Positions 11,743 through 44,785 of a stretch of DNA of 64,000 nucleotides are shown one piece after another. Within the stretch, counting starts at the first letter, position 1. Each line of letters begins with the position of its first letter. A program made the translations under genes and the position numbers. Location: sequence record MK250028.1; one strand, 5' to 3'. The notes beneath the pieces are model-generated. The model ran no database searches. It was not told where the DNA came from and worked only from the letters and a program-made list of their open reading frames with translations.

Positions 11743-12196
11743 TTTTAAAACATTTATATATGCCGGTTTCTTTGTATCAGATGATGATAAGTAGAAACTT
11801 GAAATTGCATTTTGTGAGAATGTAGAAAATGGTGCTTCATATCTACAAGATTGGAAAGTGTATATTGATCACNNNNNNNNNNNNNNNNNNNNNNNNNNNN
11901 NNNNNNNNNNNNNNNNNNNNNNTATCATTAATTATTTGAAGGATACTCCGCCTGATACACATATGTATTTAACGGTAGATGGAATTGGTAGATATGAAAA
12001 TGTATTTGCGTTTAGAATTAAGAAAACAGAAGTAGTATCTATGTTGATTAAGAATAAACAACCACATATTACATGTGTATTAAATCCTGATACAAATAAA
12101 CCTGTTGATAGTAATAAGATTTGTAACTGGATTGATATTAATCCTATTAAGATAGATACAGTTTGTAAGATTTTTAACAAGAAGAAAAAGAAATAA
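11732..12196 (+). CDS. putative 2H phosphoesterase
   Basis: ATG at 11732 is in frame with the 11858 ORF through one TAG (11792); C-terminal PHIT...KPVDSNKICNW; first His (YIDH) runs into an N gap. Confidence 0.55.
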
Positions 12197-12198
12197 TT

Positions 12199-12921
12199 AT
12201 GAATACTTATGATTTTACAGATCCATTTGATTATGAAGAATATATGAAATTATTGAATAATTTCTTAGGTCCATCAGTTGAAGAGAAAAATAATATTATA
12301 TGTAATTCTCATTTTACACTACACCCAGTTAATTCTGATACTTATAATAAGTTTAAGGAATATCTTGAATATGAATATGATAAGAATACTTGTTTTTTTA
12401 TGCATATTTGTATTGATGGAAAAATTATAAATGATTCTGTTTATTTTTGTAGATTCGATTCTTATGATTATTTATATTCAAAGATAAAGGATTATAATAA
12501 GAAGAAACATTATTTTGAATTTTTCACTAAATGTGATATAGCGTCATATACAAAAGAAGAAGTTGATAAGTATAATGATGAATATGAGCGTTATCATTAT
12601 AGAGGAAAAAAACGAAAGGTTGGTGAGAAATATTTAAAGAAAACAGATGTTATTGTTAATCTTAAATCAGGTAAAGAAGTATCGTTTATTGAAATACCTA
12701 AGTATAATAGAGGATATATTGTATATGAGAAATATTATTCACCAAATGGTGAATATAAAATTATTTCTTTAGAAACAGGTAGAATAATTGAATATGATTA
12801 TGGTGATAAAATTGAAACAGATAATCATGTAATATTTAAAGCGAAACGTAATGATTATAATGATCCTGTTAAAGCTATAGTTCTAGATAAAAGTACAGGT
12901 GATTTTATTTATATTGATTAA
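12199..12921 (+). CDS. hypothetical protein
   Basis: 240-aa ORF. Confidence 0.7.
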   Translation: MNTYDFTDPFDYEEYMKLLNNFLGPSVEEKNNIICNSHFTLHPVNSDTYNKFKEYLEYEYDKNTCFFMHICIDGKIINDSVYFCRFDSYDYLYSKIKDYNKKKHYFEFFTKCDIASYTKEEVDKYNDEYERYHYRGKKRKVGEKYLKKTDVIVNLKSGKEVSFIEIPKYNRGYIVYEKYYSPNGEYKIISLETGRIIEYDYGDKIETDNHVIFKAKRNDYNDPVKAIVLDKSTGDFIYID

Positions 12922-42591: not shown

Positions 42592-42603
42592 TTAATTTAA
42601 ATG

Positions 42604-42632
42604 TAGACAATAATACATTATTAATATATAAT
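42604..42632 (+). promoter_or_regulatory. TAGACA-N17-TATAAT promoter upstream of the tRNA
   Basis: TAGACA 42604-42609 and TATAAT 42627-42632. Confidence 0.6.
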
Positions 42633-42691
42633 ATATATAAATTATTTGATTAAACAAATTAATGAAAAATTAAAAATAATTTATTAAAATG

Positions 42692-42722
42692 TAGACAATA
42701 TCAAATAAATAACATATAAATA
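42692..42722 (+). promoter_or_regulatory. TAGACA-N17-TATAAATA promoter upstream of the tRNA
   Basis: second tandem copy of the same motif. Confidence 0.6.
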
Positions 42723-42840
42723 ATATAATAATTAAAAACAAACGCTTATTTGATTTTCGTAGCGTTATGGATAAGTTGATAGAATTCAGAAATTCCTTTT
42801 AAGACGAATACACATGGAATGGTCCATTGGTGGAATTGGT

Positions 42841-43149
42841 AAAGTGTTTGCCTGCATTAATTTGTAGAATCCATCAAATTCAGTATCAGTTAGGATTAAA
42901 TTTTAAATATTAGTAGTTGCTATTGACGAAAATATTGACAATAATTAATTTATTGTTACCTGAGGAATAAGTGTTTATTTAATAAACAACGAAGAAGCTG
43001 ACTAAGAAAACCTAAGGTCTTCATAAGAAGATAGCTTGGTAATACTGAGCCAAGATAATTTTTAATTATAAGGTGCAGAGACTATACGGTGGGAACTAAT
43101 AGCAAGTTAAGATATAGTCCAAACTTTATAGAAATATAAAGAGTTTTTG
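42841..43149 (+). ncRNA. group I intron in the tRNA D-loop (309 nt, no ORF)
   Basis: P1 GGU-AAA/UUU-GCC with U.G at the 5' splice site, P10 GUGUUU/AGACAC, P7 GACUA 43080 / UAGUC 43115, terminal G 43149. Confidence 0.88.
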
Positions 43150-43164
43150 AGACACGAGGGACTT

Positions 43165-43512
43165 AAAAAATTTGAGTGCTCTATTGAGAAATCATAGAAG
43201 TAGAATCTCCCTAACGAAACGGAAGCCTAATTATTGGTGACAATAATGGTGGTGACGAACTCACTAAGTTGTTATAGAACGTTAATCTATATTAAATGTA
43301 AATTGAAGTGTTACAGCATAAATAGCGAAGAGACTATAGAGGAGATACCTAAGTTAAAGTACACGAAGAATAATCAATTAGATTATCACTATATATGAAG
43401 AGTATATAGTTTTATAATAAGGAATGCGCATTACTTTAATATGGTAGTAAAATAGTCCAGACTACAACATCTTAATAATTAAGATGGCTTGTATTAAAGC
43501 AAGAGTAGTAAG
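43165..43512 (+). ncRNA. group I intron in the tRNA anticodon, U34/A35 (348 nt, no ORF)
   Basis: P1 ACUU-AAA/UUU-GAGU with U.G at the splice site, P7 GACUA 43332 / UAGUC 43453, terminal G 43512. Confidence 0.9.
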
Positions 43513-43568
43513 AAAATCCCTTGGGCAGAAATGCCCGTGCCGGTTCGAATCCGGCATGGACTACATAT

Positions 43569-43607
43569 AAAAGTCTGATAATCAATAGCTTAGATTATCA
43601 GACTTTT
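43569..43607 (+). terminator. intrinsic terminator after the tRNA
   Basis: AAAAGTCTGATAATC/GATTATCAGACTTTT hairpin. Confidence 0.78.
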
Positions 43608-43648
43608 ATTTTTATATAGTATATAAAGTATAATTAATATTTTTAATA

Positions 43649-44785
43649 ATGATTACAATTACAGAACAATATATAAAAGAGTACCAAAAGAAATTAGATG
43701 ATATTTCTAAATCATTTGATTTAGAGAAACAACATATTATAGTTGAAGAATTATCAATTAAAGTTTCTGCACCAGATTTTTGGGATGATTTTGAAAGTGC
43801 GACATCAATCACAAAAGAACTTAATACAGCAAAAGAAAAGATAGATGATGTTGAACATATGAAAATGCTTATTGATGAGTTATCAACTGCATTAATGTAT
43901 TATAAGGAATTTGAAGGTAAAGATGAAGAAGAATATATAAATCTAGCGAATTCTGAATTAATTAGTGAATTCAGTAAATTTGAGGATAAGTATAGATTTG
44001 TTGATCCTACAGATTCATTAGGAGCTGTATTAGACATTAATGCAGGTGCAGGAGGAACAGAAGCAAATGATTGGGCAAATATGTTATTCCGTATGTATGA
44101 GATGTGGGCAAAATCAAATAATTATAAGTTTAAAGTTTTATATTATTCAGAAGGGGATAAAGTAGGTATTAAAAATGTATCTATTGAAATTACTGGTAAT
44201 AATGCGTATGGAACATTAAAAGGTGAAACCGGTGTTCATAGAATGGTAAGGGTTTCACCATATAATGCACAAGGTAAACGTATGACTAGTTTTGCTGCAG
44301 TTTCTGTTGTGCCTTTAGTAGATAATTCTATCAAGGTTGAAATTGACGATTCTAAATTAACAATAGATACATTTAGATCTTCTGGTGCTGGTGGTCAAAA
44401 TGTAAATAAGGTAGAATCTGGTGTACGTGTAAATTATATGTATACAGATCCAGATACAGGTGAAACAGAAAAAATTCAAGTTGCAAATACAGAAACAAGA
44501 GATCAACCAAAGAATAAAGAAAGAGCAATGCAAATTCTTAAATCTATTCTTTATAAGAAAGCATTGGATAAACAATTAGCTAAGAAAAAAGAAATAGAAG
44601 ATGCAAAACTTAAAAATGAATGGGGTGCACAAATTAGATCTTATGTATTTGATGATAAGCGAGTAAAAGATCATCGTACAGGTTATCAAACAACTGATGT
44701 TGATTCTGTTATGAATGGAAATATAAATGGTTTTATAGAATCATATAATAATTGGATTATTGAGCAAGAAAATAATAGACTTTAA
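43649..44785 (+). CDS. prfB: peptide chain release factor 2
   Basis: GGTEANDWA, GETGVHRMVRVSPY (SPF-type motif), FRSSGAGGQNVNK (GGQ), WGAQIRSY; no internal frameshift. Confidence 0.95.
   Translation: MITITEQYIKEYQKKLDDISKSFDLEKQHIIVEELSIKVSAPDFWDDFESATSITKELNTAKEKIDDVEHMKMLIDELSTALMYYKEFEGKDEEEYINLANSELISEFSKFEDKYRFVDPTDSLGAVLDINAGAGGTEANDWANMLFRMYEMWAKSNNYKFKVLYYSEGDKVGIKNVSIEITGNNAYGTLKGETGVHRMVRVSPYNAQGKRMTSFAAVSVVPLVDNSIKVEIDDSKLTIDTFRSSGAGGQNVNKVESGVRVNYMYTDPDTGETEKIQVANTETRDQPKNKERAMQILKSILYKKALDKQLAKKKEIEDAKLKNEWGAQIRSYVFDDKRVKDHRTGYQTTDVDSVMNGNINGFIESYNNWIIEQENNRL

Follow-up and report, generated by a model that had tools for sequence, protein, structure and literature searches.

A leucine tRNA gene of a giant gut phage split by two predicted self-splicing group I introns, and the likely kinship of its anticodon intron with the cyanobacterial and plastid tRNA-Leu intron

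The group I intron of tRNA-Leu(UAA) in cyanobacteria and plastids is the textbook example of an ancient bacterial intron, and its patchy distribution has long been debated. It interrupts the anticodon loop between U34 and A35 (CUU/a...g/AAAA), has no open reading frame, begins with P1 followed by a P2 with a GAAA loop, and has a long P9.0 just before its terminal G. The Azoarcus tRNA-Ile intron of subgroup IC3 is another compact ribozyme of a tRNA anticodon loop, at a different loop position, in which the L2 and L9 tetraloops dock in receptors in P8 and P5 (PMC4333387). In phages, an earlier review states that all introns known at that time were in protein-coding genes (PMC3984707), and the group I introns reported from crAss-like and Jug gut phages also concern protein genes and often carry homing endonucleases (Yutin 2021, PMC7886860; PMC12880540). 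For the Lak phages, finally, highly conserved and "enigmatic" tRNA introns have been described from eukaryote-mode tRNAscan, without assignment to an intron class (Devoto et al. 2019, PMC6784885). That description lists one intron for Lak-B, in tRNA-Tyr(GTA), and 30-31 tRNAs, and a doubly interrupted tRNA-Leu(UAA) gene is not among them.

Here we consider such a gene in a window of 64,000 nucleotides (record MK250028.1), which is Prevotella phage Lak-B1 (MK250020.1; 100% identity over 951 bp). The original prediction placed a group I intron at 43165-43512, at the same U^AA position as the cyanobacterial and plastid intron but in a Bacteroidales phage, and this observation is correct to the base. 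Exon 2 ends ...GGGACTT, the insert of 348 nt starts AAAAAATTTGAGTG and ends ...GAGTAGTAAG, and the next exon starts AAAATCCCTT. The flanks form a class II tRNA-Leu cloverleaf with the loop C U U ^ A A A A, so that the anticodon is UAA, and a second group I intron lies in the D-loop of the same gene. The coordinates are collected in Table 1.

Table 1. Exons, introns and predicted helices of the Lak-B1 tRNA-Leu(UAA) gene, in window coordinates
Position	Strand	Feature	Description	Support
42821-42840	+	Exon 1	Acceptor 5' strand, D-stem 5' strand and D-loop up to ...GGT	ARAGORN with introns allowed starts the tRNA at 42821; identical to the contiguous D-arm of three other phage genes (L019, L025, L028)
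42821-42827 with 43556-43562	+	Acceptor stem		Covaries in Lak-C1
42830-42832 with 43153-43155	+	D stem		
43157-43161 with 43517-43521	+	Anticodon stem		
43523-43536	+	Variable arm		
43539-43555	+	T arm		
43563	+	Discriminator A73		
42841-43149	+	Intron 1	309-nt group I intron in the D-loop; P1 GGU^AAA-GUG-UUUGCC at 42838-42852, P7 43080-43086 with 43113-43119, P9 with GAAA loop 43124-43141, terminal G 43149	RF00028 40.5 bits, E = 1.2e-8, on 42967-43141; empty site ...GGTAGACACG in tRNA-Leu genes of other phages; 97.7% identical in Lak-C1; cyanobacterial tRNA-Leu intron profile HMM matches 43008-43089, E = 1.3e-3
43150-43164	+	Exon 2	15 nt: rest of D-loop, D-stem 3' strand, G26, anticodon-stem 5' strand, C32 U33 U34	Invariant between Lak-B and Lak-C1
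43165-43512	+	Intron 2	348-nt group I intron between U34 and A35, no open reading frame	Boundaries from the tRNA fold, U(-1) and terminal G; longest overlapping ORF 54 aa
43161-43177	+	P1	Exon ACUU (43161-43164) with guide GAGU (43174-43177), U.G at the splice site; AAA/UUU extends the stem; UUU can alternatively pair with the 3'-exon AAA as P10	ACUU/GAGU in Leu and primase copies, CUCU/GGAG in suppressor-tRNA copies
43179-43200	+	P2	Hairpin with invariant GAAA tetraloop (43188-43191)	Seven sequence variants all fold to the same hairpin with a GAAA loop
43205-43210	+	P3 5' strand	AUCUCC, pairs with 43341-43346 (GGAGAU) and crosses P7	AUCUCC/GGAGAU, UCUCUC/GGGAGA, and AUUCCG/CGGAAU in the Lak-B1 suppressor copy
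43215-43257	+	P4, J4/5, P5, P5a	J4/5 GAA; P5 GCC/GGU; P5a hairpin with GUGA loop (43228-43248)	P5a: 10 variants, all paired, all with GNRA loops; P5 pairs 3/3 in 16 of 19 scored copies; P4 (CGACA/UGACG) pairs 4/5 in most copies and 5/5 in one, in the Lak copy 2/5 in register, or 4 pairs with a larger internal loop; layout parallels L185
43270-43318	+	P6	UGU/GCA with inserted hairpins P6a (43273-43291) and P6b (43297-43315)	Ten different P6 helices across the family, all fully paired
43332-43337	+	P7 5' strand	GACUAU, pairs with 43452-43457 (AUAGUC)	Invariant in the 23 copies scored; strands match the P7 consensus of RF00028
43347-43445	+	P8	ACC/GGU, closing a CCUAAG...UAUGG motif with the sequence of an 11-nt GAAA-tetraloop receptor; 86-nt lineage-specific insertion (43354-43439)	ACC/GGU, GCC/GGU and GGCC/GGUC; compact copies lack the insertion
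43461-43509	+	P9.0, P9, P9.1	P9.0 ACUAC (43461-43465) with GUAGU (43505-43509), enclosing P9 (43469-43485) and P9.1 (43487-43503)	P9.0 ACUAC/GUAGU against ACCAC/GUGGU; P9.1 CUUG/CAAG against CUUA/UAAG, including between Lak-B and Lak-C1
43512	+	Terminal G (omega G)		G in all 24 family members
43513-43563	+	Exon 3	A35-A38, anticodon-stem 3' strand, long variable arm, T arm, acceptor 3' strand, A73; no CCA encoded	84% identical to the annotated tRNA-Leu genes of cr272_1 and cr273_1
43571-43617	+	Terminator-like hairpin	14-bp stem followed by a U-rich run, directly after the tRNA	Folding energy -20.9 kcal/mol, z = -6.6; missed by a simple terminator scan limited to loops of 8 nt, the loop being read as 9 nt

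Standard ARAGORN and Rfam at gathering thresholds find nothing in the window, and ARAGORN with introns allowed finds the tRNA-Leu frame at 42821-43564 but lumps both introns and exon 2 into one intron of 649 nt. That the frame is nevertheless real, far beyond chance, follows from three comparisons. Lak-C1 has changed five of the seven acceptor-stem pairs on both strands, across about 730 nt of intervening sequence, and one pair of the variable arm as well. The same intron family occupies the same tRNA-Leu site in 12 non-Lak gut-phage contigs, ten of which give clean ARAGORN calls of tRNA-Leu(taa) with one intron at this position. Cyanobacterial genes, finally, have the same junction, CTT/...G/AAAATCC. 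The gene is the only one for tRNA-Leu(UAA) in the 548-kb genome, while TTA and TTG together make up 72% of the Leu codons in the long ORFs of the window.

Rfam does not detect the anticodon intron: RF00028 gives no hit on 43165-43512 even at E <= 10, where it finds intron 1 only, no hit on nine relatives at E <= 0.1, and only 15.7 bits (E = 0.17) on a compact relative, the Lak-B1 suppressor copy, while L185, a tRNA-Leu intron from a Cytophagales (Bacteroidota) metagenome-assembled genome, scores 66.8 bits and a cyanobacterial intron 84 bits. A search of Lak-B1, Lak-C1 and Lak-A2 with the same model found two other places in Lak-B1, below the cut-off, but missed both introns of this gene. Comparison of 24 distinct relatives supports, in spite of this, a full group I fold, with a guide sequence that changes together with the exon it pairs with, compensatory changes in P2, P3, P5a, P6, P8, P9.0 and P9.1, and a terminal G in every copy. 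Absence of the P3-P7 pseudoknot had been named in advance as an observation that would overturn the group I reading, and the pseudoknot is present: P3 crosses P7 and has three compensated variants, while P7 is invariant and hence uninformative. Differences between Lak-B and Lak-C1 inside the intron fall in loops or are compensated. There are exceptions, in that one family member (L024) has a U-A pair instead of U.G at the splice site and P4 is weak in the Lak copy. An alternative P4 (AAUU/AAUU, next to P6) was considered, but was dropped in favour of CGACA/UGACG, which parallels L185 and has one fully compensated variant. These pairings were read from the compared copies, without a full-length covariance model or a programmed count of structure pairs. 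For the copy from Lak-A2 (L002), a complete cloverleaf could not be reconstructed around the intron.

The family also splits amber-suppressor tRNAs, including that of Lak-B1 itself, and crAss-like primase genes, the nearest non-tRNA copies being those in the primase genes of cr116_1 and IAS virus. The exon halves of the crAss-like primase that flank family members each align to uninterrupted primases and abut there. Guanosine-dependent self-splicing was not assayed, and the RNA evidence is indirect. In metatranscriptome contigs the 3' end of the family (...GTGGTAAG) is joined to its own 5' region, as expected of intron circles, but this concerns relatives. For the present locus, four metatranscriptomes showed no joint removing 42841-43149 or 43165-43512, only unspliced contigs of a Lak-C1-like allele, which could be DNA carry-over. 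Since these are contigs, their lack of a joint is not evidence against splicing, and the indirect evidence for splicing, with an acceptor stem that covaries across both introns, is strong.

The interpretation that came with the original prediction is only partly supported. It held that the insert is a group I intron at U34^A35 of tRNA-Leu(UAA) in a phage of a Bacteroidales host, which is the case, the host being Prevotella. It also held that the core looks similar to that of the D-loop intron, which would suggest a phage-type lineage, and this is not supported. The local alignment score between the two introns is 49 against 37 +/- 6 for shuffled sequences, and the shared words that matter are the two P7 strands, AGAGACTATA and ATAGTCCA. 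The 105 nt between P3' and P7' at first suggested the helices P7.1/P7.2 of subgroup IA, to which the T4 td, nrdB and sunY introns belong, but the compact relatives show that the extra sequence is an insertion inside P8. In all members P8 starts immediately after P3' (GGAGAU-ACC; GGGAGA-GGCC), which leaves no room for P7.1/P7.2 in the compact ones. The compact members, of 228-246 nt, have instead the layout of the IC3 subgroup typical of bacterial tRNA introns, with P2 present, no P2.1, no P5abc, no P7.1/P7.2 and a long P9.0, and the Lak copy adds peripheral hairpins only; the comparison did not include subgroup-specific covariance models. As in Azoarcus, the family has an L2 GAAA loop and, in P8, a receptor-like motif, but the L9 GAAA loop is missing, the P9.1 loop has 6-7 nt, and the docking is inferred here, not tested.

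As to whether the shared site reflects independent colonisation or transfer, the two alternatives offered at the outset, the evidence favours shared ancestry with bacterial tRNA-Leu introns. A core signature of 16 bases taken from the phage intron, AGAGACTNNANNGGAGNTACC, retrieves about 97 bacterial tRNA-Leu introns, nearly all cyanobacterial, and a signature across J6/7, P7, P3' and P8 is shared (AGAGACU..A..GGAG.UACC). Five non-tRNA hits of the core pattern (L040, L053, L054, L068 and L082) lie in coding sequence and are chance matches. Direct similarity is, however, weak: the cyanobacterial profile HMM gives E = 1.9 against intron 2, the alignment z-score of this copy is 2.7-3.1, and the reverse search of 120 bacterial loci with the phage-family HMM found only one, L058, at E <= 0.01. 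Any link is old or indirect, and not a recent transfer. The phage intron differs from the cyanobacterial ones also in that its guide block reads GAGUGC rather than GAGCC, its P7'/J7-9 region UAGUCCAGAC rather than AGUCCAA, in that P5 carries an extra GNRA hairpin and P6 and P8 carry insertions, and in that it shares its gene with a second intron.

The two groups may be bridged by L185, the nearest bacterial relative found here. L185 has 230 nt, sits at the same insertion site, keeps the canonical IC3 P4-P6 (GAGCCAAG...AAGGUGUAGAGACU) and matches the cyanobacterial profile HMM with E = 5.8e-21, and is clearly a classical tRNA-Leu intron. It also shares with the phage family an identical guide block of 18 nt, AAAAAATTTGAGTGCTCT, at the 5' end and three collinear blocks, and has the guide/P2/P3 and P7'/P9.0 blocks of that family, with a similar P2 and J2/3 and the same UAGUCCAGACCACAA after P7. 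None of the 97 classical introns has those phage-type blocks. The alignment z-scores are 13.5-16 for L185 to cyanobacterial introns, 5.4-7.6 for L185 to the phage family, 3.3-6 for compact phage copies to cyanobacterial introns and 0.8-2.6 for phage copies to intron 1. The bit scores that link L185 to the phage family are, on the other hand, low (10-14 bits), one of the three blocks is similar by construction, since it contains the pattern used to pull the full sequence of L185 from its genome, and L185, which first surfaced through the core-signature scan, could be a recombinant rather than an evolutionary intermediate, so that homology by way of this intermediate is left undecided. A search with the pattern ATAGTCCAGACNACAA in 401 Bacteroidota genomes gave three hits against three control hits, of which only L185 and a second locus, L186, are introns.

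Taken together, the insert is best explained, with fairly high confidence, as a group I ribozyme intron that must be removed from the pre-tRNA to make the tRNA-Leu(UAA) of the phage, and most likely as a divergent descendant of the classical bacterial tRNA-Leu(UAA) intron lineage, probably acquired within the Bacteroidota/phage gene pool and later moved to suppressor tRNAs and primase genes. The tRNA frame and its boundaries, the compensatory changes, the distribution of the family and the sequence comparisons are direct results of the analysis, while the splicing pathway is inferred from the anatomy. In this pathway, one transcript runs from an upstream promoter to the hairpin at 43571-43607. 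In intron 2 the exon end would pair with the guide to form P1, free guanosine would attack after U34, and the terminal G, held in place by the 5-bp P9.0, would then occupy the G-binding site, so that ligation of the exons restores the loop CUUAAAA. The D-loop intron would splice independently in the same way, and the product of 86 nt would then need end processing and CCA addition.

Of the other explanations, the one that survives best, although unlikely, is that the fold is group I but that splicing depends on a protein. Many group I introns need protein cofactors in vivo, and the weak P4 together with the insertions of 86 nt in P8 and about 45 nt in P6 could require a phage or host chaperone or maturase for efficient splicing. 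Against this, the L2 GAAA loop and the P8 motif are conserved as a pair, P9.0 is strong, the compact relatives have a complete core, and there is no intron-encoded protein. The intron has no endonuclease gene either, unlike mobile introns with a homing endonuclease. Somewhat less likely is independent colonisation by a phage-type intron, related to intron 1 or to the IA types, that landed by chance on the same site. The short target CTT^AAAAT suits the guide sequence, the family sits at ...CTT^AAAAT also in the primase genes, reverse splicing needs only a few guide pairs, and direct similarity to cyanobacterial introns is weak. This is opposed by the lack of significant similarity to intron 1, the absence of P7.1/P7.2, the core signature and architecture shared with bacterial tRNA-Leu introns, and the link through L185, with its reservations. 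The primase copies, furthermore, carry an extra hexamer resembling a tRNA-Leu exon, A(A/G)ACTT, which suggests movement from the tRNA into the primase gene. It is doubtful, too, that the gene is a pseudogene disabled by two insertions. Spliced RNA was not seen, Rfam misses the intron, P4 is weak and the published Lak-B tRNA counts do not include the gene, but the acceptor stem, the variable arm and the helices of the intron show compensatory changes, the intron is 100% identical across Lak-B1 to B9, a terminator-like hairpin follows directly, and the gene is the only one for a tRNA that would read 72% of Leu codons. Removal by a protein endonuclease, as for archaeal/eukaryal-type tRNA introns, or joining in trans has in its favour only that the Lak introns were found by eukaryote-mode tRNAscan and left unclassified, and is very unlikely in view of the covarying group I helices, the conserved U(-1) and terminal G, the guide that tracks the exon, and exons that are collinear on one strand within one promoter-to-terminator unit.

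A more far-reaching possibility, which we regard as unlikely but which is not excluded, starts from the fact that one ribozyme family interrupts both the main leucine tRNA and the amber-suppressor tRNA(CUA) of gut phages that use an alternative genetic code, Lak-B1 included. Self-splicing could then act as a gate on the decoding apparatus of the phage, which might delay TAG read-through and UUA/UUG decoding until the ribozyme is active, or keep the anticodon loops out of reach of host anticodon nucleases. In this view, phages would also be the vehicle that carried the ancient tRNA-Leu intron between bacterial phyla.

Group I introns at this tRNA-Leu site and in phage genes are known from before; what is added is that the standard Rfam model misses a whole family of tRNA introns, and that the Lak-B1 tRNA inventory is to be corrected. 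The phage does encode a tRNA-Leu(UAA), and its amber-suppressor tRNA(CUA), interrupted by the same family, is missed by standard tRNA scans. We found no report of two group I introns in one tRNA gene, 15 nt apart, with one of them in the D-loop. The compact members, with their receptor/tetraloop design, may be useful as ribozyme scaffolds. For the tRNA-Leu(UAA) intron itself, the reading favoured here means that a divergent branch of the lineage circulates in abundant gut phages, i.e., in Lak megaphages, crAss-like phages and other contigs, which would supply a concrete vector for its spread.

The interval 42700-43650 of the window is identical (100%) to Prevotella phage Lak-B1 (MK250020.1) and to Lak-B2, B5 and B9, and Lak-C1 carries a copy of the locus that is 92% identical. 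The window, which contains 1,089 undetermined positions (N) that were not filled in, corresponds to Lak-B1 from about 247,981 onward. The whole public Lak-B1 record was searched with ARAGORN, nhmmer and one short-word blastn, from which, within the span of the window, only the coordinates of the tRNA-Leu and intron 2 matches and a few chance blastn word matches were taken. Exons, both of the tRNA and of the primase discussed below, were compared one at a time, no joined sequence was constructed or searched, and ARAGORN was run only on natural, unspliced DNA.

The original prediction placed a group I intron at the U^AA position of a tRNA-Leu gene, and its coordinates and end sequences prove to be exact. 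The gene is split into three exons, which together give a class II cloverleaf with the anticodon loop C-U-U^A-A-A-A (here and below, ^ marks an insertion site), from which follows that the anticodon is UAA. The tRNA has a 5-bp variable arm and discriminator A73, and no CCA is encoded. The gene is directly followed by a 14-bp hairpin and a U-run (-20.9 kcal/mol, z = -6.6), and the next gene downstream encodes a class I peptide-chain release factor (Pfam PCRF 164.9 bits, RF-1 105.8 bits), presumably the RF2 reported for Lak phages, so that a decoding-related tRNA and a release factor are neighbours. Upstream of the tRNA gene the 12-mer AATGTAGACAAT occurs twice, and its first copy is part of the best sigma-70-like match in the region (TAGACA, 17-nt spacer, TATAAT). 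It is a possible phage promoter motif. The coordinates of these and other features are collected in the table.

Coordinates of the tRNA-Leu(UAA) gene, its surroundings and related loci
Feature	Sequence	Coordinates	Strand
12-mer, first copy	window	42600-42611	
12-mer, second copy	window	42688-42699	
tRNA-Leu(UAA) exon 1	window	42821-42840	
Intron 1 (D-loop)	window	42841-43149	
Terminal G of intron 1	window	43149	
tRNA-Leu(UAA) exon 2	window	43150-43164	
Intron 2 (anticodon loop)	window	43165-43512	
Loose ends of metatranscriptome contigs (runs X5 and X6)	window	43169	
tRNA-Leu(UAA) exon 3	window	43513-43563	
Class I release factor gene	window	43649-44785	+
Interrupted tRNA, anticodon C-U^A	L174 (Lak-B1, outside the window)	12033-12350 (genome 412033-412350)	
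Compact 228-nt family member	L006 (cr115_1)	1344-1571	
Extra hexamer in primase gene	L003	2504-2509	
Extra hexamer in primase gene	L005	1495-1500	
tRNA-like insert in P9 region of tRNA-Leu intron	L019	3634-3770	-
Interrupted tRNA-Arg(UCU)	L186 (G312:C3:91001-94016)	1418-2140	-
Copy of the intron core	L002 (Lak-A2)	1407-1840	
abiF RNA motif	L023 (IMG/VR phage contig)	3509-3546	-

Neither ARAGORN with default settings nor Rfam detects anything here, but ARAGORN with introns allowed recognises the outer tRNA-Leu frame. The strongest evidence that the tRNA is real comes from Lak-C1, where the acceptor stem reads GGCGAGG/CCTCGCT in place of GGTCCAT/ATGGACT in Lak-B1, so that five pairs are changed on both strands while the G1.U72 pair is kept. 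The variable arm has, in addition, one G-C to A-T exchange, while the two introns that lie between the acceptor strands are 97.7% and 93.4% identical. Both pairs of boundaries are fixed by natural empty sites: twelve IMG/VR phage contigs have the D-arm contiguous (...GGAATTGGTAGACACG...) and therefore lack intron 1, yet carry an intron at CTT^AAAA, and the crAss-like phage cr272_1 has an uninterrupted tRNA-Leu(taa). The gene is the only one for tRNA-Leu(UAA) in the 548-kb genome, and TTA and TTG make up 58% and 14%, respectively, of the Leu codons in the long ORFs of the window.

The Rfam model RF00028 does not find intron 2 at E <= 10, nor does it find nine of its relatives at E <= 0.1, and the structure was therefore derived by comparison. 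BLAST and two pattern scans of IMG/VR, together with a scan of the Lak-B1 genome, gave 24 distinct relatives of 228-644 nt. In P1, exon ACUU pairs with the guide GAGU, and the guide switches to GGAG where the exon ends CUCU. P2 occurs in seven variants, always with a GAAA loop, and P3 in three compensated versions, AUCUCC/GGAGAU, UCUCUC/GGGAGA and AUUCCG/CGGAAU. P4, J4/5 and P5 follow, where P5 carries a GNRA-capped P5a hairpin with ten variants. The weak spot is P4 in the Lak copy, which pairs 2 of 5 in register, or four pairs with a larger internal loop. P6 is represented by ten different helices, all fully paired, P7 is invariant (GACUAU/AUAGUC), and P8 closes a CCUAAG...UAUGG motif. The five base pairs of P9.0, ACUAC/GUAGU, covary with ACCAC/GUGGU, P9.1 is CUUG/CAAG against CUUA/UAAG, and the terminal G is present in every copy. 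The absence of a P3-P7 pseudoknot had been specified in advance as an outcome that would count against the assignment, but P3 and P7 do cross, so the pseudoknot is present. The differences between Lak-B and Lak-C1 lie in loops or are compensated, and there is no ORF above 54 aa.

The family occupies three kinds of host gene. In tRNA-Leu(UAA), between U34 and A35, it is found in Lak-B, Lak-C1, one other megaphage contig and 12 contigs of 55-225 kb. In five tRNA-Leu introns (those at loci L019, L022, L025, L028 and L030), the P9 region holds an insert that looks like a degenerate tRNA, with a 5' half GGCGGAATTGGTATACGG and a T arm GAGGGTTCGAATCCCTT; ARAGORN does not call it, and it recalls the 'tRNA inside an intron' reported for Lak-A. 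The family is found, secondly, in a tRNA with anticodon C-U^A, which by the U(-1) and terminal-G rule is an amber suppressor. In crAss-like phages of the cr115_1 type (locus L006, and also L016, L018, L020 and L032), this intron is a compact member of 228 nt upstream of terL, and ARAGORN calls the tRNA Ser(cga). In Lak-B1 itself, a class I tRNA with the same anticodon by this rule is interrupted by a 246-nt member of the family (nhmmer E = 4.6e-18), in which P3 is fully compensated as AUUCCG/CGGAAU. This tRNA is also called Ser(cga) by ARAGORN, is missed by ARAGORN with default settings, and is not among the tRNA introns counted for Lak-B; Lak phages read TAG as Gln. An 80% identical copy of the intron core lies in a different Lak-A locus (L002, from Lak-A2, and L008), flanked by an acceptor-stem pair (AGCTTAG/CTAAGCT) and a T arm, but the exons sum to only about 60 nt, no G is available for a U.G pair, and the host gene was not identified. 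An abiF RNA motif (RF03085, 50.1 bits, above its gathering score) lies beside the tRNA array of an IMG/VR phage contig, L023.

The third host is the DNA primase gene of cr116_1, IAS virus and three contigs. Uninterrupted primases read EGKVTLKIYQPFN, while the interrupted ones read EGKVTL(K/R)L^KIYQPFN. The primase copies therefore carry an extra in-frame hexamer, A(A/G)ACTT, seen as AAACTT or AGACTT just before the intron in cr116_1 (locus L003) and IAS virus (L005), and absent from the uninterrupted primases of crAss001, cr85_1 and cr112_1. The hexamer resembles the end of a tRNA-Leu 5' exon and gives two candidate 5' splice sites, which we read, by inference, as a hint that the tRNA was the original home of the family.

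Intron 1 is inserted in the D-loop of the same gene (...GGT^AGA...), 15 nt upstream of the anticodon intron. It matches RF00028 at 40.5 bits and has its own P1 (GGU^AAA...UUUGCC), its own terminal G, and relatives in phages of Firmicutes and Fusobacteria, while other phages have the empty site. The original prediction had suggested, from an apparent similarity of their cores, that the two introns belong to a common phage-type lineage. The two introns share, however, the two P7 strands and little else: their local alignment score is 49 against 37 +/- 6 for shuffles, and the global z is 2.6. The interpretation is therefore only partly supported, in that the group I assignment stands while the inference of a common phage-type lineage is not supported. 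The family is also not IA, because P8 follows P3' directly.

To examine the relation to the cyanobacterial intron, a pattern of 16 specified bases from the J6/7-P7-P3'-P8 region of the phage intron was used to scan genomes, and it retrieved at least 120 loci. Of the 120 examined, 97 are tRNA-Leu(UAA) introns with the junction CTT^...G^AAAATCC, almost all from cyanobacteria. About 280 chance matches would be expected across the whole collection, and the five non-tRNA hits that were inspected were such matches. The classical introns score about 84 bits to RF00028 and share the P1/P2-GAAA layout and the long P9.0 with the phage family. Direct profile similarity is not significant, since an HMM of the cyanobacterial introns gives E = 1.9 against intron 2, and an HMM of the phage family finds no cyanobacterial intron at E <= 0.01.

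The proposed link between the two groups is L185, a tRNA-Leu(UAA) intron in a Cytophagales (Bacteroidota) MAG. It is a clear classical member (RF00028 66.8 bits, cyanobacterial HMM E = 5.8e-21), but it also carries the 18-nt guide block AAAAAATTTGAGTGCTCT of the phage family, a similar P2 and J2/3, and UAGUCCAGACCACAA after P7, and none of the 97 classical introns has those blocks. The linking scores are low, the pattern used to pull the full sequence of L185 lies inside one of the three shared blocks, and L185 could be a recombinant, so that this comparison by itself leaves a link through L185 undecided. Alignment z-scores fall in the order L185 to cyanobacterial (13.5-16), L185 to phage family (5.4-7.6), compact phage copies to cyanobacterial (3.3-6) and phage copies to intron 1 (0.8-2.6). 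A Bacteroidota tRNA-Arg(UCU) gene, L186, has a 648-nt anticodon-loop intron with the same 3' design, sharing UAGUCCAGACCACAAAUCC and the ...GUGGUAAG 3' end with the phage family.

Contigs from four metatranscriptome studies cover the locus. Three of them hold a Lak-C1-like allele in unspliced form, running from exon 1 through intron 1 and exon 2 into intron 2. Failure to splice was the other outcome that had been named as contrary to the assignment; no exon-exon joint was seen in these contigs, which could be precursor RNA or DNA carry-over, but as they are contigs this is not evidence against splicing. Two contigs join the 3' end of the family (...GTGGTAAG or ...GTGGTAGG) directly to its own 5' region, upstream of the guide sequence. 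In these joints, ...AAGTGTGGTAAG or ...GTGTGGTAGG, the intron 3' end with its terminal G, meets the 5' region of a family member just upstream of AATTTGAGTG, which is the junction expected of circularised introns and is suggestive for relatives, not for this copy.

Introns in Lak tRNA genes have been described as 'enigmatic' by Devoto et al. 2019, who listed 30 tRNAs and one intron (in tRNA-Tyr) for Lak-B1 and assigned no class. A 2014 review states that all phage group I introns known then were in protein genes, and papers on crAss-like and Jug phages describe introns in protein genes only. No report was found, in a literature collection that is incomplete, of group I introns in phage tRNA genes, of one in a tRNA D-loop, or of two in one tRNA gene. 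Williams 2020 found bacterial tRNA group I introns only in anticodon loops, with the classical four all IC3.

The feature is thus real and was accurately described. That it is a self-splicing group I intron, needed to mature the only tRNA-Leu(UAA) of the phage, is well supported by comparison but has not been shown experimentally. The phage family is most likely a divergent offshoot of the bacterial IC3 tRNA-intron stock, probably exchanged within the Bacteroidota/phage pool, rather than an independent IA-type invader or a recent import from cyanobacteria. The lineage reading should change, from a phage-type intron like its neighbour to a divergent member of the bacterial tRNA-Leu intron lineage that Rfam misses.
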